NCBI GenBank assembly: GCA_013265495.1
Contig: MU062559.1
Coordinates: 5,788,577 to 5,852,576, forward strand
DNA length: 64,000 nt
Reading direction: 5' to 3'
Source: Vicugna vicugna
Lineage: Eukaryota
This document shows, in pieces, positions 15 through 29,970 of the stretch. The notes below the pieces were generated by a model, which worked only from the letters and a program-made list of their open reading frames with translations, made no database searches and was not told the DNA's origin. The translations under genes were made by a program, and so were the position numbers. The stretch's first letter is position 1, and the number at the start of each line of letters is the position of its first letter.

Positions 15-16844
<16,830 letters not shown>

Positions 16845-16971
16845 GCCAGGATGACACTACCAGGACTCCTCAGGCCAGAAGTCTCCCCTTGGCAAGCAGC
16901 TCCCACCCTGCCTGGGCACTCAGAGCCCAGGCCCGGGGCCCACAGAGACCCCAGCTGTGTTGAGTTGGAGC

Positions 16972-16977
16972 AGTAAA
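16972..16977 (+). terminator. Candidate KCP polyadenylation signal (variant AGTAAA).
   Basis: AGTAAA about 130 nt after the KCP stop, followed by a GU/U-rich tract (GGTTTCCTTTCGTGTATGTGTG, about 16995-17016). The next AATAAA is at 17773. Confidence 0.45.
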
Positions 16978-18131
16978 CTTGGGGCCTCCCCTAAGGTTTC
17001 CTTTCGTGTATGTGTGCTTCCTCCTGCTGCAGGGGTTCTGGTGTGGGCTGCTTGGAACCTGGGATCCAGAGGTCAATGTTTCCAGGGTCAGGGTGGTGGC
17101 AGCTGTGGGACCTTACCCATTCTTTGCACCTGTACCCCGAGCCATCCCAATACCGAGTGCTCAGGCACTTCCTGGGCCACTCTAAGAGCTGGTGACATAG
17201 GGATCCCCCACCTGGAGTAGGGAACAGGAGAGACAATGTGTCTGTGATGACATACAGACACATGTGAAACCCATGTACATCTGTGTGTGTTCATAGCAAC
17301 ACCCACCCCAGATGGACACGTGGGAGGGGACACGTGCAACTTTCAAAGACATCCTTATAGGGGAAGGAATGTGGGTTTTGAAGTTGAAAAAAAATCAATT
17401 TGACAAGAAGTCTCTTCAAAGAAAACTCTATTTTGAGTTCTCTTTGCCACCTACCAGGTGTGTGACCTTAGGGTTTTAGGGACCTTAGCTAAAAGATCGG
17501 GGCACTCAATTCTCATTGCAGGAACCTTATTATTCCAACAGGGAGCAAAGGGAGAGCGAGCTTTGGGCTGAACTGAGACCCCCTCCCTGCTTGCTCAGCC
17601 CATTTCTGCTGGGGCCCCTTTCACGGAGCCCTTACAAGGCAGTTACAGGCAAGACTGCTCATGGTGGCAGGAGGTGTGGAGACTACAGACCATCTCCTAC
17701 GCCCGTTCCCTCCCCTTGTCATAAGTCATGCAAACTGTGTTCTCATCTGTCTGCATCTCACGTGTCTTGGGGAATAAACAGAGTAACCAACAGATAGCAC
17801 TCTGCGCTCGGGCCACTTGCAGTGAGCACTGGGGAAGAGCATCCCTGCTTATACTTGGGACCACATTTTCCCAGAGCCTGATTCTCATGGCCGTCTGTCT
17901 CCAATGAAGGAGATAGTGCCACCTGTTAGTTAGGGCAACTTATTCTCTGGGGCCGTTTTCTTGACTGTGAACTGGGGATGAGAGTAGTAGCACCTACTTT
18001 GTCGAGTTGCTTCGAGGAAGGATTACACGGACATAGGCTTCTGTGTCCTGGCACACAGTAAGCTGCTGGGAGCTGCTGCTGTACTGGGCACATCACATAC
18101 CCATACAATGCAGTTGCAAGCATAACATGTA

Positions 18132-18334
18132 CAGTTGACATTTGGAACAATGGGCCTACTTATACTCAGATTTTTTTCAATGTAAATACTGCAGAACTAC
18201 ACCGTCCACTATTGGTTGACTCCTTGGATAGGGAGGAACTGCCGATACGGAGAGCCAACTATAAGTGATATCTGGATTGTCCACTGGGTGGAGGGTCAGC
18301 ATCCCTAACCCCTGAGCTGTTGAAGGTTCAACTA
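18132..18334 (-). mobile_element. MER8/Tigger2-like TcMar non-autonomous DNA transposon.
   Basis: TA followed by CAGTTGAC...GAACAA at the left end and GTTGAAGGTTCAACT at the right (terminal inverted repeats). Internal GGAGGGTCAGCATCCCTAACCCC matches MER8 as recalled. Confidence 0.7.
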
Positions 18335-18641
18335 TCTATGTAAAACTGATGCTCGTTCCGGACTGCAAATGAGCACCTGCACACACCTCTTTATCAGGAT
18401 CTTACTCCTTACCCCACACTGCCACCCAGATGGCCAAGAAACCTGCATCAGAGTCAGGTCAGCATCTCTATGAGACTTGGCTGAGGCCCAGGCCCTGGCT
18501 CAGATGTCAGGGAGCTGCATTATTTAGCTCAGGAGCCTTTGTCTCCTCCTTGCTCCTGTCCCCAGCTCCTGGTCCTCCTCCTCTCTCGAGGAGCAGCAGA
18601 GGGAGAGGAAGGCAGGATCATCTTCACTGGCCCACTACCCC

Positions 18642-21600
18642 ATGGAGCAGACAGCCACTCCTGGGGGCCGAGGGCTCCCTTGTAGCCTCAAGCAGGCCTT
18701 GGCCCTGTACCAGCGCATCTTCCACTGCCCTGCAGGCTTGGGCCAGCTCTGGGCTGCCCTGCAGCAGGTGAGGGCGGCGGGGCACTGTTTTCAAGGGGGT
18801 GGGCTCTCCGTGGGGCCTGATTCCACTTTGCCTCCCCAGGTACAAGAGGGCCAGGCCTGTCCCTCAGGCCTGGAACTGCCCACGGTGCTACTGCAGATGG
18901 AGCGGAGCCGGCGGGCCCAGGAGCAGGTAAGGTCCAGCCGGCCAGGGGATGTGGCAGAGGGCAGGGTGGGTGCCCCTTCACATTCTGGCACCCTGTCTTC
19001 CTGCAGCTCCTGTGGGACTTGGAGCTGCTGACCGGGGCAGGGCTGGGCCTCTTCTGGCCCCACCGGGCCCAGCTTTGTGGTCTGAGAGGCCAGGCCCAGT
19101 GTGCATGGAGCCAGGGCAGCATGCCCCATGGTAGGATGGATGGGGGCTCTGAGCAGCGGACAAGTTGGGTGAGCTGAAGGCAGGGGGGCAGTCAGTGGGA
19201 CTTTGGGACACTTAAAGTGGTTGAGAAGTAGAAGGGCTTAGAGATAGAGGGATCTGGGTTCAAATCTCTGCTGACGCTCCTTGTGATTGTGAGCCTGTTT
19301 CCTCAGCTACGAAATGGGGAAGATAATAGCTCTTTCTCAGGGGGCTGCAGGGGGGACTGTATCTGGTACCCAGGACTGTCCCGGCTCGTTACCATTCCAT
19401 AGTGAACTATCTTGGTCAAATCAACTGCGTGTTGACACCTAGAAGCCTTTGGACATGGCTGCAGTGAGGGAGGAAAGCAGGCCTGGTGGGGCCCAGAGGG
19501 TGGAGGCACTGATTCCCAGGGTGCCTCTGAGATGAGACCCTGAGCAGCCCCAGTGCCTGGTCCCTCCCTCCAGGAAGGAGGGAGCTGTGGCGACTGGGAA
19601 CTAGGATGTGCCTCCCAGTCCCAGCTCAGCCGTCAACTGCCCGAGGCCTTTTGGGCAGGTTAGTAGCTGTGGCAGGAGGGGGTGTTAGCGATGACCACTG
19701 AAGAAGTGTCCAGCCAACACTTTTGGCCAGGACTACAGTCTCAACTGAAGGCTAGAGTGGGCAGGAGGGATCCATTTCCAAACTCCTTCACTTGGAGGGG
19801 AAGAGGAGGGTGGTCACACAAGGACACGGATACCAGGAGGAGGGATCACTGGGGGCTTGGAGGTCGCCCACTACACTGGAGGTTGATGCCCTATGGACTA
19901 GGCAGCCCCCAACCCTTCCAGAGTTCCAGGCTGTGCTCATCGCCTCCTGCTGAGGACTCCCTGAACCAGACCCATCAGCTCCTGGAGGGGTGAGCCTTTC
20001 TCCCAGGGAATTTCATCCACTCCATGTTGCCACACTAAGCAACCAAGCACTGGATCCTTCGTTCTGTCTCTCTCCATACCCCTGCCCATCGACCCCTCCT
20101 CGTTCCCCCAGCTCCTCCTGGGGCTCTCACTCAATTGTATCCATAAATATGGTTGCCCACAGCCCCTGGAAACGGTAACCTCGAGTTCCAGCTCCTGGGA
20201 CCCAGTGATGGGTACAGAGTTGGGGAAAGATACCCTGGACTGAGCTTGGGTGTTGGAGTGGGACGGCTTAGCAGCCTACTGGGGGCAGGGAGTCTGGGAG
20301 GCAGGGTGCCCCTGTCTCTCCAGAGCCCAGATGCAAAAGGTGCATCTGAGGCAGTCTTTGCATTCCTGTAGGGGGCAGTCGGTGGACCCATCATCAGCCT
20401 GGGATCTAAGTGAAGCCAGGAGTAATGCAGACCCAAGGTGGGAGAGCCCTGGCATGCCTGCAGAGTCCACGCCTGGTACGTTGACAGGAGGGGTTAGCAG
20501 CCAGGAGAACAGGCGTCCCTGGGCTGGAGTGGCCAGCCTAGGTTGGGAGGATTGGGGAAGCCCTCACCCCAAGTCCTGGGATTTCAGTCCATCCTCACCT
20601 ATTCCTTGCCTCGTACTTTTTGGGGGGGTGCCAGGGGCACCCAGGGACAACAGGTAGATTTTCTTTTATATGCCAATTCCACCTGATTAGTACCAGCTGT
20701 CTCAGGCACTGTGTCCAAGAGGATTCTGAAGCTAAGCTGGGGTACAGAGGGGAGAGAGCTGGGAATCACTGTCCACGGCTGCCCAGGGAGGAGGGACTTG
20801 AATGGCCGCTCCAAGCTGCCTAGTTGCCACCCGCATGCCAGGCACTGGGGAGAAACAGCACAAGAGAGACTTGGCTCATCACTTGTCCTCATCTCTAAGG
20901 AAATCATAGCCTAGTGAGAGAGTATGACAATAAACAGGCGATCAGAATTCAGTAGGATGGATGCTGTGAGCCCTGGGCCTGTTAGTTTAAATGAAACAGG
21001 CTCTCAAGTGATTTGTTAAATAATAGGCCTGGCAAAGTCATAAGCCTTCAATTGTGCCATCATGCCCGGGAGAGAGGAGGAAAGTGCCAATGATTATTTC
21101 TGACCGACAGAGAGATTTTTACAAGTATATTATTACCTGGGAAGACATTGTGGGAGACATCAATTACAACACTACAACCAGAGAAATAAATGACCTAGTA
21201 AGACAACAGATCAGAATGACAAGGGGACAGGGGTTGGAGGTTATTTTCACAGTTCATAGCAATAATTTCTAAAGGCTTGGGAGTCTTATTAGATTCTTTT
21301 GTTTGAAACTCTTCAAAAGACAGATTTGTTTTCACAGAGAGCATTCCCATTTGGTTACTGTTATGAATATTCACACATCCATATTGCATAAAGATGGCAT
21401 TTCTTGTGAGAGTTCTCAATTTAAGACCTTACAAAATCAAGTTCTTTTAACTAGTTTTATGGATGCAAAACAATGCTCCTTCCTCCACAGCTGCAAAGGA
21501 GCAGCGACATTTCATCTTTTTTTAGATTCCTTTTGTTCATTAGGAAGACTTGCAGTTTTTAGGTTAGCCTCTGGCCTAAAATTCCACTTCTTGAATTTCA

Positions 21601-24344
21601 CTTGATTTTTCTGTCAGAAACCAAGAAAGAGCTAAGGAGGATTATCCTAAATAGTAAGAAACTAAGGTCCATATGGTGGGGCTGGGCAGGCACACAGGGA
21701 TAAAGTGGGGGTAGTCCTTATGAAGGACTGACAAGCCAGGTAAAAGCAGTCCCTTCCTGCTCCTAGGCCTACCCTGGTGGTTCTGAGGAAGAGGGTGTGC
21801 AGGTTCCTCTGAGGTGGTCCTTGGCTGGGAGGATGAGGAAGATGGGGTCAGCTGTTGGCAGGCAAACCTGACAAACAGGCACATAGCAGACTGTGTAAAT
21901 AAAAGGGGAGTGATGAACTGTGACAGCCTTGAAATTCCAATACCAGTCCTCAGGGTACCTCCCTGCTTCCATGCTGGGGACTCCCTAGGTTTCTTGGTTC
22001 TGGTTCTGGTGGAATGTGTGTGTGGGGGGGTGCTGGGACAGGAGCAGAGGGCTCCCAACATCAGTCTTTGTCCCGTAGGTTGCTTACAAGAGCTGAACCC
22101 CACCACCACCGGCAGTTTTGGGGAACCAGGAAGCTCAGAGTTCAAGGTGAAAGGGTTGAAGGGTCCTGGGCAAGACCCCTCTCAGATTGGGGATAGCAGG
22201 GGTTTGTCTGGGAGGAGGCTGCTGGGGTGAGAAGCCCACTCACTGCCAGGTGGAAGAAGGGACTATCAGTGAAGCACCTTTTCTATTATATAACATGGAT
22301 TTAATGAATTCAGGAAAAAAGGCAAGGGCCCTTACAGGCCCACTGGGGTCTCCAGGGTTCCATGCGGGACATGGCCCTAGCACAGGGGGTGCCTCAAAAA
22401 CCTGGGACAAAGTGTTCTTCCTTCCTAGGACCTGACCCAGAGGGATGAGAGGGGCCAAGCAGAGCCCACAACCCAGAGGCCCAGTCGATCATCATCCAGG
22501 AGCCTACAGGAGAAAAAGCTTGCTCAGGGAGCCCCAGGACCCTCAAGCTTCCCGCCCCAGGGCCTGCCAGAACCCCAAGATCCCCTGGAGGGGCTGGGCT
22601 GCAGCCCAGGCCAGGAGAGAGCAGAGCTTCAGAAGCTGCTAAGGATTGAGATGATTCAGAGTCAGAGAGAGGAGGACCCTCAGGAGCAGAAAGAAGAGAC
22701 CCCTCAGGATCAGAGAGGGGAAGCCCCCCAGGGGAAGGACAAAGACTTTCCTCAGAGGAAGAGAGAGAAGACACAACAGGGTCAGAGTGTGGAGGCTACG
22801 CAGGCTCTGAGGGAAGAAGAGGCCCCTGAAGGGCAAAGGTGGGAGGCCCCCCAGGGTGAGAACAAAGAGGCTCCTCAAGGTCAAGACAGAAATCACTCTA
22901 AGTGTCAGAGAAAGGAGGCCCTCTTGGAGCAGAGTGAGGATTCTCCTCAGGGCCTGGAAGTGAAGATCCTTCAGTCTTCCGACGGCAGAGGCTGTCTCTC
23001 ACAAGCCCTGGAGGTGGCTCAGGGAGAGGCGCCTACACTGCCCTCGGAGGAAGGCGGCTCCCTGGGAATTCTGGGGGACTTCTGCAGGTCCCTGGGAGAA
23101 CAGATGCCGCAGCCTGAAAGCTGGGAGAGCCCAGGCCCCCGGGGAAGGACCAACCAGCTGATGCAGGTTAAGACTGATGCCTGGACAGGAGAGTCGGCAT
23201 CGGCCGTGGGAGAGCAGGGGCCCGCCCGGGAAGGAACGTGGGTTCCCCTTCCGACCCCGAGGCCCCCAGCCCAGCCGCCACTCCCAGGCCCAGGAGTGGT
23301 GATGCTAGCGGCCCGACACACTGGGGGCTCCGGGCAGCTGGAGCACCTTGCAGCTCCCTCGGGGCACCCGGGCCTGGTGCGCGATCCGTACGCGCTTCAG
23401 GGCCCGGGAGGAAGCCCCAGCCCCGCGGAGCAGGAGGTGGGCGGCTCCACGGGGCTCCCGGGCGCCCTCGGGGAGTCGAGGGGTGGCGCCGAAGCCCCCA
23501 AGGCCTCGAAGGCCGCTTGGCCCGAGCCCCCGGGCAGGAAGAGGTCGTCGGCGGGTGTGAGCGCGGCGCAGCAGGAGACGGCTCTTCAGCGGCTGCTGGA
23601 GCTGCACCGTGAGGCTAGGCGCCGCCGGCGGCAGGACCGCGAGCAGCAGCGGCTCCGGGTGCGCGGCCGGGCCGGGCCGGGCGGGCGGGCGGGCGTGCTG
23701 TCGGGACACCGAGGGGCGGCGGGGCGGCCGCTGACAGCCGCCTCCCCCAGGTCCTGGAACGCCTCCGCATCGCCAGGAACCGCCACTGCCGGGTGCACCC
23801 CCTGGGACCTCCACCCAACCCAGCTCAGCTCCCACCACAGGCAAGACCCCCCCCCAGGAGAAGGCAGTGGGGCCGTAACGACCCTGCCCGGGCGGGAGGC
23901 GGCGGCCGAGCTGGGCGCGACCCGGGTCCCTTGGATGTGCTTGCGCCGCGCACTTGCAATGACACCTGCGGAGAGCGGGAGGGGCGGGCCTTCCCGGGTG
24001 CTGCCCCCTGCTGGCCTCATCGAACCCGGGCGCTGGGAGGCGCGGACGCTCAGCGCTCCGTACGGCCCCAGGAGGACGCGGCCGGGCAGCGGCGCGCCCT
24101 GCGGGAGCAGCTGGAGCGGGCGCACCGGGAGAGGACCGGGCGGCTGCGGGCTCTCGGAGCCAGGTGAGGGGGCGAGCGGGGAAATTTGTGGGGTGGTGGC
24201 AGTCCTCTTTCCCTGGCATCTGGGGTGACAGACCACTCTCTCCCCAGGAACACCCAGAACTTCCAGCAGCTACTGTGGCCCCCTGGCGCTGAGGAGCCTG
24301 GAGAGTATCGCTCACCATTCCCAGACTCCTCTAGTCACTGCTGA
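18642..24344 (+). CDS. Uncharacterised 8-exon protein-coding gene candidate, about 637 aa: helical N-terminus, E/Q/P/G-rich low-complexity middle with an octapeptide repeat, Arg/Glu/Gln-rich coiled-coil-like C-terminus.
   Basis: Hand-built model: 18642-18767 (ATG, ends phase 0), 18840-18926 (0), 19007-19130 (1), 22079-22146 (0), 22429-23658 (0), 23751-23840 (0, GC donor), 24072-24163 (2), 24248-24344 (TGA). Total 1914 nt with no internal stop. Introns are 72, 80, 2948, 282, 92, 231 and 84 nt, all ending in AG. AATAAA follows at 24758. No gene symbol recognised. The exon 3-4-5 junctions and the true start are least certain. Confidence 0.72.
19232..19420 (+). mobile_element. MIR SINE.
   Basis: CTGGGTTCAAATCTCTGCT...GAGCCTGTTTCCTCAGCTACGAAATGGGGAAGATAATAG. 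Confidence 0.65.
22666..22956 (+). repeat. Degenerate 24-bp coding repeat, about 12 octapeptides, consensus xxEAPQGQ.
   Basis: REEDPQEQ KEETPQDQ RGEAPQGK DKDFPQRK REKTQQGQ SVEATQAL REEEAPEGQ RWEAPQGE NKEAPQGQ DRNHSKCQ RKEALLEQ SEDSPQGL. Confidence 0.8.
23200..24190. promoter_or_regulatory. Intragenic CpG island over exons 5-7 of the uncharacterised gene.
   Basis: Abrupt rise in GC and CpG from about 23200 to 24190, introns included. Confidence 0.65.
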
Positions 24345-24529
24345 ATCCTCAAAGGGATGATTAAGAGATGGGGGGTTAAGGAAAAAGCAAGAGGTCAGAG
24401 AGTTTCAGAACGGCCCAGAAAGCAGCCTCAGCGCCTGGGAGAGCCAGACAGACACACACGACAGCCTTGCCCCACCAAGAGGTGTGTTATTTCTTTTTAT
24501 CCCCCCTCAGCCCACTACCTGGCCTAGGG

Positions 24530-26696
<2,167 letters not shown>

Positions 26697-27150
26697 AGTG
26701 CATCACCTCACACAGGGCCAGGGTTCCACTAGCCATGCCCTCAGCACACCTCACATGCCTTATGTGCTGAGGCAGCAGCAGGCCAGGGCCCACTGGCCAA
26801 GAGCCTTGACCCCCAAACCTCTGATAGGACCCAGACTAGAATCAAAGACTTTCAGGTTTCCTGTGAATTTCGCTTCCATCCCTTGAAGTCATGTCCCCTC
26901 CCAGCCAATACAGACTCAAGTCGGGGAACCAGGGGTCTGGATGCCAGCCTCCTTCATTCCTCCCTGCCAGAGCTGGTCATCTCTGTTTCTGAGGACTCTT
27001 GGCACAATCTTCTCAGTCCAACTCTTCTATGTTTGAGTCTTTGGTAGAATCTTTTCCAGCCCTGCCAATCCAATCCCCACCCAACGGCCTCATCCCACAT
27101 GTGTCCTTTCTAGCACCCAGCCTCAGTTTGGAGAGAAGCAAGAACGTTAC

Positions 27151-27156
27151 TTTAAT
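27151..27156 (-). terminator. ATP6V1F polyadenylation signal (ATTAAA).
   Basis: + strand TTTAAT at 27151-27156, about 240 nt downstream of the TAG. Confidence 0.7.
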
Positions 27157-27396
27157 TTAACATCAACAATGACACTGTGTAACAGCACAGGGAAGAGGTA
27201 GTGGAGAGAAGACACTCAGGCTTCCTGTACCCTAACCAGCCTTGATTTTAATGGCACAGCCCCAGCAACCTAGAAGCCCCTCGCCTAGCCTCTCAGTGGA
27301 GTGGGAAGGGGCAGGGAATTGGAAATCAGAGGCTCAAATCTTAGAGAAGGGCTGATGGCAAGCCTGGGGAGAGGCTGCAGGGCTGTGGGGAGTCCC

Positions 27397-29642
27397 CTAG
27401 CGGAGGTCTTCAGCCGTGAACATGCCCCTGGCCCTGCGAAGGATGGAGTCCTTGGCAGCATCATAGGGGTGCTCCTTGGATGGGATCTCCAGGACGGCCG
27501 GAATGGAGCGCTGGTGGGCATCGAGCGCATGCCGCACCATCTCTGCGATGTACTGGTTGATGAGGATGATGCCAATGTCGTCCCGGTTTAGAAACTGCCT
27601 GTTGGGAGAGATGAGAAGGGAGTCCAGGGCGGTCCACTCTCAGTTGGTGGGCTGGTCTGCAAAGGGGAACAAGCTTGATCCAGAGAGCACAATGGACAAG
27701 GGAAAAGGTTGCTATCTTAAACTTGCTCCATTCTATTCAGAATCAATTTCACTCAAAAGCTAAGGGCCACGGCTTCTACCTTCCCCTGCTTGGAAGGCTC
27801 CCAGCTGAACTGATAATGAAGATAAGGGTGCATGCTGGTGTATTCCATATGCTGCCTTCATGTAAGAAAGGAGAGGATAAGAATACATATGTCTGACCTT
27901 TTTATCTGCAGAAAGATAAGGAAGAAGCTAAGTGGTTATCTGCGGGGTGGAGGAAGGAGGTAATGAAGTAGAAGAGGTCGGGGTGAGAGTATGACTTCTC
28001 AATGTGTGTATCTTTTAAATATTAATTTAGAAACCACATGAACACATTAACTTTTCAAAAGAAAACATTAAATTTTTTCAGGGGGCACTGTTGAGACCAC
28101 TCAAGGTCTATGCTGCTAAGGGCAGGGGGTAGATCAGAGGGGAAGTTTGGCCTGAGTCAAGAACACAACACAGGAAGAGGAAAATTAGTGACCAAGGAAA
28201 TCACACTTTCCACATAGAGAACCTGGCGCTGGACTCTTACTTTCATGTGATCCATTCCATGTGACCCATTCATTAATTTATTTACTCCTTAAAAACTATT
28301 TACGGAGCACCTACTCTGTGCCAAACACTAGGGAAGGTTATACTTAATGATTTCTGAGGTCCCTTTTGATTGGAAACTTGGAAAGTTCTTGCAGTAATAT
28401 TTGTCCTTCTCTCATGACAACTTGGGTCACTCTACCAGACTGCTTAGGGATCAGCAGAGATCAGCTCCCAGGTAAGGGCCTATCATCCCCCAGGCAGCGG
28501 GAACCAGTTTCAGCCGGCAGCTCAGGACTGGGCTGCTTAGGGAGAAACAGGTAAGAGTGGTTTGTTCCTGAGACTTGGCACAGGGGCCCTAGAGAAGGGG
28601 TGTGGGGAAAAAAGGGAGGACTGGCACCCTCAATTCTAGTCATCAGGACACCTCCTGGATTAAGGGACATGCCTGCACCTACATTTTGAAACTATTGCTC
28701 TTAACCCAGGACAGGAAATGCATATTTGAAGTGCAAGGTCTTAGCAGAAGGTAGGACACAGTCCTGATAACCTGTCCACTGTGCTAAGGGCAATGGGAAA
28801 TTCCAAAGCAAACAGAAGACAGCGGCACAAGCAGAGTGTAGACCTGGCTTAAGGAAGGCAGAAAGAGTGGGGACCAGGTTCAAATCCCTTCCCTGCTCAG
28901 TCTCTTCAGCATTGTATGACTTTAGTAGGTACCTTAACCTCTGTGAACTTTTTAGTTTTCTACCTGTAAGTGGGAATACCCACTCCCTACCTTACCTCAC
29001 GATTGGGGCCTCAAAGGGATATGAAAATAAAGAAAGCCGAACTCACTGCCCAGGTGTTCAGAGTGTGTGGTTCTTTTAGGGGTCAACTCGCAAAAGAGTG
29101 CTTGCAGTGCCCGAGCCTGCTCTACGGCTGAACTGGGGAGGCCCCTGCAGGGAAGCTGAGTCTGGCCCCCTCCAGGGCCTAGGTGCTCTAAAAGCCCAGC
29201 TCCGGCGGGGCAGGTTGGGCCGAGCGCGGCGCCAGCCCGTCACGAGCTCTGTTCCCCTTCTTTCCTGACACACGGTCATGTGAGGGGGGAGCTTGTGGAC
29301 CCGACATAGCCCCGGTCCCATACGGAGGCCTTCGCTCCGGAAGGGCGGGTGGACCGACTTCTCTGAGCCCGGAGGACGGGGTCTGATACTTCGGTTAAGG
29401 TCTGGAAGCCTAGTGCCGCCCCCGCCTTCCCGCGCTGCCACTAGGCAGCGGAGGGTCCCGTTCAGGCCNNNNNNNNNNNNNNNNNNNNNNNNNNNNNNNN
29501 NNNNNNNNNNNNNNNNNNNNNNNNNNNNNNNNNNNNNNNNNNNNNNNNNNNNNNNNNNNNNNNNNNNNNNNNNNNNNNNNNNNNNNNNNNNNNNNNNNNN
29601 NNNNNNNNNNNNNNNNNNNNNNNNCTTCCCCCTCCCCGCCAT
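27397..29642 (-). CDS. ATP6V1F: V-type proton ATPase subunit F, 119 aa, 2 coding exons; most of exon 1 is hidden by Ns.
   Basis: ATG at 29642 gives MAGRGK before the N run at 29469-29624. Exon 2 is 27598-27397: [69 protein letters not shown]. The exon 1 end (about 29485) is inferred from the known 119-aa length and is not visible. Confidence 0.96.
27870..28075 (+). mobile_element. Old L1 (L1ME-like) 3' end fragment in the ATP6V1F intron.
   Basis: AGTGGTTATCTGCGGGGTGG...GACTTCTCAATGTGTGTATCTTTTAAAT...A-rich tail. Confidence 0.45.
28835..29010 (+). mobile_element. MIR SINE.
   Basis: CCAGGTTCAAATCCC...GTATGACTTTAGTAGGTACCTTAACCTCTGTGAAC...TTTCTACCTGTAAGTGGGAATA. Confidence 0.65.
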
Positions 29643-29970
29643 CCTGACAGCCAGGCAGAGATCAGCCGCGACCACCCGAAGTCACCGAAGCCCCGCCTCC
29701 GCAGCGCACCGCCTTTTCGGCCGCACCTCCACCCGTCAGACATGCGCAGTTCCACCACTCCGCCTCCCGGAACATGCGCATTAACAGCAAGAGCGCCTGA
29801 ATGTGAATACGCCTGCGCCATAAAGAGAGGCCAGAACCCGAGGACTACGGTTCCCAGAAGCCCGCGCGGCATCACCGGCTTGCGCAATCACGTTAGCGCG
29901 TTCCTTCAACCAACTTGTGGAGCCTACTGCTGTTAGACACCGAGACGCCGGAGAAGAAAAGACGGTTCTC
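29200..29970. promoter_or_regulatory. ATP6V1F promoter CpG island.
   Basis: CpG-dense region around the ATG, with repeated CATGCGCA (NRF1-like half sites, about 29742 and 29773) and TTGCGCAAT at 29880-29888. Confidence 0.75.

Follow-up and report, generated by a model that had tools for sequence, protein, structure and literature searches.

A ten-exon gene between KCP and SPMIP1 in Vicugna vicugna and its probable place in an unnamed protein family of jawed vertebrates

Is there a protein-coding gene between KCP and SPMIP1 in Vicugna vicugna, and, if so, what kind of protein does it encode and how old is it? The DNA analyzed here (hereafter, the window) is a stretch of 64,000 nucleotides (nt) from assembly GCA_013265495.1 (contig MU062559.1, positions 5,788,577 to 5,852,576 of the forward strand). 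A preliminary description of this window, made from the letters alone, had proposed an unrecognized gene of eight exons and about 637 amino acids (aa) at 18642-24344. The results presented below indicate, with a probability of roughly 0.85, that this interval carries an intact, expressed-type protein-coding gene of ten exons on the + strand (2124 nt, 707 aa), that it is the same gene as one already modeled by NCBI in Vicugna pacos, and that it belongs to an unnamed family of jawed vertebrates whose members may function as adaptors or scaffolds.

When joined by script, the eight intervals of the preliminary description (18642-18767, 18840-18926, 19007-19130, 22079-22146, 22429-23658, 23751-23840, 24072-24163, and 24248-24344) do form, as had been claimed, a coding sequence of 1914 nt and 637 codons with a single terminal stop, in which all acceptors are AG and all donors are GT except for a GC after 23840. 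Six of the eight exons proved exact, whereas exon 3 had been drawn 38 nt short and two exons between exons 3 and 4 had been missed; these are here designated a and b so that the original numbering of 1-8 is retained. The resulting ten-exon frame is open throughout. The ten-exon plan is supported by a spliced Logan contig (L001, 3112 nt, run SRR17982464) that derives from another mammal, carries protein P0011, and shares ~82% DNA identity with the window; by seven orthologous loci that were fetched for comparison (fox, reindeer, gray whale, horseshoe bat, sooty mangabey, Steller sea lion, and thirteen-lined ground squirrel); and by an NCBI entry, "uncharacterized protein [Vicugna pacos]" (P0224, 784 aa). 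L001 aligns with the window in blocks at 18407-19140, 19920-19990, 20382-20464, 22077-22147, 22427-23660, 23747-23841, 24065-24164, and 24244-24866, and it is ungapped across the junctions that join 19168 to 19922, 19989 to 20372, 20475 to 22079, 22146 to 22429, 23658 to 23751, 23840 to 24072, and 24163 to 24248. All residues of the ten-exon product (707/707) are identical in P0224, the sole difference being that P0224 also translates the 231-nt interval between exons 6 and 7, which adds 77 residues that are identical to the window's own translation of that interval. Judged from this identical model, the gene is already annotated in NCBI, which refutes the proposal that it had gone unrecognized; the accompanying guess that it might be a LOC model was apt, as uncharacterized LOC models of it exist in many mammals. 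The features of the gene are as follows.

18407-18641, + strand: 5' untranslated region (UTR), minimum extent; the L001 alignment begins at 18407.
18642-18767, + strand: exon 1, coding part, 126 nt, with ATG at 18642, phase 0, and a GT donor; 126 nt in 7/7 loci and the same in P0224.
18840-18926, + strand: exon 2, 87 nt, phase 0; found in the orthologous loci and in P0224.
19007-19168, + strand: exon 3, 162 nt, donor TGG/gtgagc; the homologous exon end is present in L001 (previously ended at 19130).
19922-19989, + strand: exon a, 68 nt, encoding SSRLCSSPPAEDSLNQTHQLLEG; L001 877-947 matches 19920-19990 across both junctions, and the residues are in P0224.
20372-20475, + strand: exon b, 104 nt, encoding GQSVDPSSAWDLSEARSNADPRWESPGMPAESTP and ending in phase 1; L001 957-1039 matches 20382-20464, and the residues are in P0224.
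22079-22146, + strand: exon 4 of the preliminary description, 68 nt; found in L001, the orthologous loci, and P0224.
22429-23658, + strand: exon 5, the large exon, 1230 nt and 410 codons; disordered core and start of the C-terminal domain.
23751-23840, + strand: exon 6, 90 nt, followed by a GC-AG intron (CAG/gcaaga); L001 is spliced exactly here.
24072-24163, + strand: exon 7, 92 nt; second C-terminal helix, ending in phase 2 inside an Arg codon.
24248-24344, + strand: exon 8, coding part; motif RNTQNFQQLLWP and TGA at 24342-24344.
24345-24767, + strand: 3' UTR as far as AATAAATAAA (24758-24767), lying opposite the SPMIP1 3' end in antisense orientation.

Projection of the ten exons onto other genomes yielded a complete frame in eight mammals (the window, fox, reindeer, whale, bat, sea lion, squirrel, and the species of L001). 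Exon lengths across mammals are 126, 87, 162 (153 in squirrel), 68 (62 in bat), 104-107, 68 (65 in squirrel), 90, and 92 nt, and exon 5, at 1002-1239 nt among the orthologues, is always a multiple of three. Selection was evaluated as medians of pairwise Nei-Gojobori (NG86) dN/dS over 28 pairs, with the same columns read in two shifted frames as controls; a test of this kind on the orthologous exons had been suggested in the preliminary description. The first 88 residues gave a ratio of 0.35 (shifted frames 0.98 and 1.18) and the C-terminal 127 columns a ratio of 0.33 (1.13 and 1.58), whereas the tail of exon 3 together with exons a, b, and 4 gave 0.57 (0.91 and 0.61), the exon-5 core 0.68 (0.89 and 0.81), and the whole protein 0.55 (0.94 and 0.91). 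By this measure, the ends of the protein are clearly under purifying selection, and the core is only weakly constrained yet preserves its frame.

The setting of the gene is equally stable. VWC-rich KCP (+), the gene (+), SPMIP1 (-), and ATP6V1F (-) follow one another in this order in 7/7 fetched mammalian loci, and the window is colinear with the gray whale locus over 13211-29880 at 82-85% identity. Placement between KCP and SPMIP1, as originally described, is therefore borne out by KCP upstream in all of the fetched loci that are colinear with the window and by SPMIP1 (PF22589, E 1e-28) on the minus strand 3' of the gene in the window itself, where it is followed by ATP6V1F. A protein search with the 410-codon exon retrieved 80 mammalian proteins, nearly all of which are named "uncharacterized LOC" or bear composition-driven automatic names. 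Alignment with the eight-exon product matched them to exons 1-3 and 6-8, and many of them have two additional segments between exons 3 and 4. Orthologues among such LOC models (e.g., P0027 from Vulpes lagopus, P0008 from Rangifer, P0004 from Eumetopias, P0041 from Dasypus, and P0230 from Apodemus) share the KCP-SPMIP1 placement, the ten-exon plan, and the end domains with the window, but they are just 45-70% identical to it in exon 5. The closest relative after P0224 is P0056, a partial "uncharacterized protein LOC116154064 [Camelus dromedarius]", which is a C-terminal fragment with an internal out-of-frame stretch.

A profile built from 30 mammalian proteins (A1) was run against a set of 1.84 billion representatives and returned 167 matches at E <=0.001, and beyond mammals it was the C-terminal ~115 positions that matched the C-termini of homologues. 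Names were looked up for 30 of these matches. They include, among fishes, teleosts (Siganus, Gouania, Dallia, Thalassophryne, Mugilogobius, Nothobranchius, salmonids, and others), sterlet, paddlefish, coelacanth, and the electric ray Narcine and, among tetrapods beyond placentals, frogs, lizards, and the marsupial Macrotis (bilby). These matches are all "uncharacterized" or mislabeled; one killifish (Nothobranchius) UniProt entry is called Si:dkey-266m15.7, presumably a clone-based zebrafish symbol, to judge by its style. Searches of the literature for the gene found nothing, and the symbol Si:dkey-266m15.7 likewise gave no literature match. Domains homologous to both the N- and the C-terminal domain are present in Gouania (P0134), Siganus (P0131), sterlet (P0215), ray (P0197), and coelacanth (P0184) as well as in lizards (P0139, P0168, and P0209), frogs (P0158, P0177, and P0233), and bilby (P0089), and the non-mammalian homologues are 743-3079 aa long, the 3079-aa model being that of Podarcis muralis. 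Comparison of mammals with teleosts by hhalign paired the C-domain at 97.7% (E 1.8e-12, 114 columns) and the N-domain at 96.8% (E 2.6e-10, 77 columns), and a hidden Markov model (HMM) made from teleosts alone matched residues 16-81 (E 9e-10) and 575-688 (E 4e-19) of the window product.

Gouania has a VWC-rich KCP-like gene directly upstream on the same strand. Moreover, four intron positions and phases are common to the Gouania gene and the mammalian gene (EQ/LLWD corresponds to EM/LFWD, RLR/VLERL to LLR/VQERL, and PPQ/ED to LPM/ED, and in both genes an intron follows the second base of the Arg codon that precedes NT). Because of this adjacency to KCP and these common intron positions, the Gouania gene is considered an orthologue; on the strength of alignment and gene structure, the teleost and mammalian genes are orthologues. 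The range of matches means that the family spans the jawed vertebrates, reaching cartilaginous fish, and that it is neither young nor lineage-restricted. The possibility that the frog and lizard proteins constitute a separate paralogous family was considered and dropped; no two-copy lineage was present among the looked-up matches, a point that was not rigorously tested. A conserved central block (teleost HMM ~128-663) is found in sterlet, ray, and Podarcis and in part in coelacanth, while it was not matched in any therian, the window included. Therian mammals have thus lost a central helical domain of ~400 aa that is present in orthologues from fish, ray, and lizard; such a difference between lineages is internal to the family and not a reason to exclude the therian genes from it. 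No Pfam family was detected on the window exons (E <=1) or on ten non-mammalian homologues (E <=0.01).

Two other ways of assembling the transcript have to be weighed. One is that the eight-exon, 637-aa form with the junction 19130 to 22079 and without exons a and b is the main product or a genuine alternative isoform. Its frame is open, its donor (CATG/gtagga) is usable, and automatic models from elsewhere vary in this region, with that of Moschus (P0006) skipping exons a, b, and 4 and that of the sea lion (P0004) using other exons. Nonetheless, exons a and b are present in L001 and the junction 19130 to 22079 is not; L001 has GG in place of the GT at 19131 on which it depends, and the junction is not used by the orthologue models either. 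In fox, reindeer, whale, bat, and sea lion, exon 3 likewise measures 162 nt and ends at a GT donor. Its additional residues (RMDGGSEQRTSW) are present in P0224, and seven loci conserve these residues along with exons a and b, their AG/GT sites being intact, including the 68-nt length of exon a (62 nt in bat) and a length of 104-107 nt for exon b. With the NCBI alpaca model also including exons a and b, the eight-exon form is improbable. A little more credible, although still unlikely, is a gene of nine exons whose true product is the 784-aa NCBI form, which has exons 1-5 and 8 in common with the window product and translates through the interval that separates exons 6 and 7. In the window (where an open reading frame (ORF) at 23793-24167 covers it), whale, fox, sea lion, and squirrel, this interval is free of stops and its length is divisible by three; it is read through in P0224 and several other models, and GC donors are rare. 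Against this stand the splicing of L001 at exactly this place, the conservation of the GC donor in 6/7 loci (it is GT in the horseshoe bat) and of the AG acceptor, an interval length that is indivisible by three in 3/7 species (reindeer, bat, and mangabey), an intron at the same position and phase in the teleost Gouania, and the majority of orthologue models, which splice the interval. Since L001 is spliced, the donor is conserved, the length is indivisible by three in three species, and the teleost intron interrupts the same codon, the interpretation of 23841-24071 as an intron is favored.

Two further readings question the gene itself or its identity. The locus could be a decaying or non-coding transcript in this species whose frame is open by chance in GC-rich DNA. 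GC content is 64-76% over 23000-24500 and reaches 71-76% across 23000-24200 (from the 3' half of exon 5 through exon 6 and the GC-AG intron to exon 7), which yields long and meaningless ORFs on both strands (e.g., 337 aa on the minus strand at 23305-24318); in addition, the exon-5 core evolves almost neutrally and catarrhine monkeys have a frameshift. A frame of 617-713 codons that is kept whole in eight independent lineages with every indel in threes is hard to reconcile with this view, as are dN/dS values of ~0.33-0.35 in the end domains versus 1.0-1.6 in shifted frames and the conservation of splice sites, intron phases, and both end domains as far as teleosts. An open frame by chance was rejected on the grounds of its conservation across species, and this reading is the least credible of those considered. 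Scarcely more credible is a relationship to CCDC187, with the gene as its camelid copy or paralogue. Nothing suggests this other than the UniRef entry of P0224, which is labeled "Coiled-coil domain-containing protein 187"; the name appears on none of the 30 looked-up profile matches nor on any match of three word-based searches, and the gene has remained a neighbor of KCP in teleost and mammals alike. Human CCDC187 is on chromosome 9 and not beside KCP on chromosome 7. A search with the frog C-domain for a named paralogue such as CCDC187 returned frog proteins only.

The preferred reading, that of an intact ten-exon gene, also has points that weigh against it. Transcript support comes from L001, a contig of another species. 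L001 retains introns 1 (18768-18839, 72 nt) and 2 (18927-19006, 80 nt) at its positions 489-559 and 648-719. These introns measure 66-80 nt in other mammals; intron 1 of the window contains no stop and keeps the frame, such that its retention would add 24 residues, and retention of intron 2 would shift the frame. The removal of both, which the N-terminal frame requires, is accordingly something that we infer from conservation and gene models. Further, a 113-codon ORF (18430-18771) begins with an upstream ATG at 18430 and extends in a different frame across the main start codon (18642); this ATG lies inside the region covered by L001, where the equivalent upstream ORF has just ~14 codons. The core dN/dS of 0.68 is near its shifted-frame controls of 0.81-0.89, and exon 3 has a frameshift in an Old World monkey. 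The functional part of the reading is inferred: the EF-hand scores discussed below are middling (Z 5-7), come from a sterlet model and not from a mammal, and concern loops that lack canonical Ca ligands, no Pfam, PDB, or literature match was obtained, and ESM Atlas scores are at most 0.78.

What, then, does the product look like? The N-domain (~70 aa) follows the pattern …LY..(I/L/V)F…C…(V/L)L.EME…(L/F/Y)WDL.LL. The C-domain (~115 aa) comprises two long helices with a Pro-rich loop between them and ends in the motif RNTxxFxxLLxP, of which, in alignment A3, N, T, and the last L are invariant and R, F, and P are present in at least 90% of sequences. The linker of the window product is rich in G, E, P, and Q and has a net charge of -18, while the C-domain is 19% Arg and has a net charge of +14. 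An AlphaFold2 (AF2) model of the fox orthologue made with alignment A1 has a mean predicted local distance difference test (pLDDT) value of 51; residues 109-545 are below 50 and essentially unstructured, helices of modest confidence are predicted at 16-28, 33-45, 55-80, and 90-107, and the C-terminal helices at 547-592 (pLDDT 96) and 611-647 (pLDDT 85-88) are confident. Together with the difference in dN/dS between ends and core, these helices agree with the earlier picture of ordered ends around a disordered middle; the middle is, however, not simply repeat-rich, its tandem repeats amounting to one weak array (24 nt x 2.9, 22663-22732).

The mammalian (fox) N-domain was modeled at a pLDDT of 50-69, seemingly without the first helix. 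A model of the sterlet homologue (P0215) has an N-domain at 1-80 with a pLDDT of ~90, a helical domain at 108-270, and two C-terminal helices. Its central region, examined over residues 108-340, has a pLDDT >90 for most of 110-270 and has neither a Pfam family nor a significant structural match. Of the structural checks that had been suggested, AlphaFold thus gave confident C-terminal helices (in fox), whereas Foldseek of the sterlet model against Swiss-Prot entries of the AlphaFold database and the PDB gave no match with a usable template modeling (TM) score or E-value (E >1). With VIA-align, sterlet residues 1 to ~77 matched EF-hand lobes of calmodulin (Z 7.0), S100B (6.2), and troponin C (6.1), as well as PLC-zeta, calpain, centrin, and EH domains (Z 5-7). 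The likeness consists of two helix-loop-helix units with two short bridging strands over 65-76 residues at a root-mean-square deviation of ~3 A, at Z values of 5-7 that are below the tool's caution line of 8 and hence "middling". The EF-hand Ca ligand pattern D-x-[DNS]-x-[DNS]-G…E is not in the window loops GGRGLPCSLKQ and QEGQACPSGLEL, and no Pfam EF-hand match was obtained in the window exons or the fish proteins; the EF-hand likeness of the N-domain is best regarded as a lead offered by the model. A sequence search of the PDB with profile A1 returned nothing. The nearest ESM Atlas neighbors of the whole protein, C-end, and N-end (the CEP126, KIAA2012, CEP295NL, TSGA10IP, CENPJ, and DAAP1 clusters), which belong to the centrosome, cilium, and testis, scored 0.70-0.78 at best, below the 0.9 line, and were rejected as evidence.

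The observed architecture is therefore one of conserved N- and C-terminal modules around a variable linker, with no catalytic signature. Such a protein might act as a non-enzymatic adaptor or scaffold, in which the N-domain and the basic helical C-domain would bind partners or self-associate and the disordered linker would serve as a tether only. Those RNA runs in which the sampled words of the locus are best represented (shares of 0.10-0.21) all bear the label "reproductive system". This is the sole, indirect hint toward the germ-cell or cytoskeletal role suggested in the preliminary description, and expression in the reproductive tract is possible.

Several lineages depart from the common plan. 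The sooty mangabey (Cercocebus atys, L006 7903-8024) has an exon 3 of 122 nt instead of 162, and this 40-nt deletion shifts the frame between exons 1-3 and exon a; read-through past the donor meets a TGA, and exons a-8 are open. It is on account of this frameshift that Old World monkey models begin downstream of the N-domain. No ape or human protein was present among the matches of any homologue search, which is absence of evidence, and the gene may be damaged in catarrhine primates, a lead that the mangabey deletion raises. The murid Apodemus has a full-length model (P0230) mislabeled KCP; rodents in general therefore keep the gene. Acceptor GG instead of AG precedes exon 2 in the horseshoe bat (Rhinolophus ferrumequinum, L005 6197-6198), and the annotated bat protein (P0013) skips this exon. 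Both P0056 (dromedary) and P0060 (Logan, primate-like) leave the conserved frame within the disordered exon and resume it ~35-55 residues later; what they read out of frame corresponds to an alternative-frame ORF of the window at 23348-23560. Such excursions represent either compensated pairs of frameshifts that are tolerated in the core or errors of assembly or modeling.

At its 3' end, the gene meets SPMIP1 tail to tail. The double AATAAA noted in the preliminary description is present as the overlapping AATAAATAAA at 24758-24767, and L001 has an AATAAA in about the same place (position 2916). L001 is colinear on to window position 25013, beyond the poly(A) signal, and the 3' end at 24767 and the extent of the overlap with SPMIP1 are accordingly provisional. 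The first exon of SPMIP1 has an ORF at 26088-26645 on the minus strand, and in the whale the coding end of SPMIP1 is ~200 nt past the stop codon of the gene.

Sources have named the gene CCDC187 (UniRef), Kielin/chordin-like protein (Apodemus), atrophin-1 (Bubalus), collagen alpha-1(I)-like, glutenin-like, RP1L1, SETD1B-like, MAP7D1-like, and IF-2-like, among others, and all of these assorted names appear to be artefacts of composition or neighborhood. An identity with collagen, glutenin, RP1L1, and the like was rejected, as no Pfam family was detected at E <=1 and the translation has no Gly-X-Y periodicity; automatic names such as collagen-like and glutenin-like arise from the low-complexity composition rich in G, P, and Q and not from homology.

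A broader account, to which slightly less than even credence is given, would be that of an old single-copy family of jawed vertebrates that has stayed next to KCP for >400 million years while lacking a name, a Pfam entry, and a literature. Its members would combine a calcium-blind, EF-hand-like N-domain with a basic two-helix C-domain; in therians, the central folded domain would have been replaced by a fast-evolving disordered exon, possibly linked to reproductive tissue, and the family may have been neglected because it is broken or unannotated in humans and apes. If the damage in catarrhines is real, it would explain how so old a gene came to have neither name nor literature. Of lasting use are the corrected ten-exon structure, including the conserved GC-AG intron that is read through in the NCBI alpaca model, and the recognition that dozens of misnamed or unnamed LOC models, from ray to alpaca, make up one orthologous family with two definable domains that are outside the domain databases. 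Once both domains are defined, annotation could drop the collagen-like, glutenin-like, KCP, and CCDC187 labels, and a first knockout, in zebrafish or mouse, would have a clean target.

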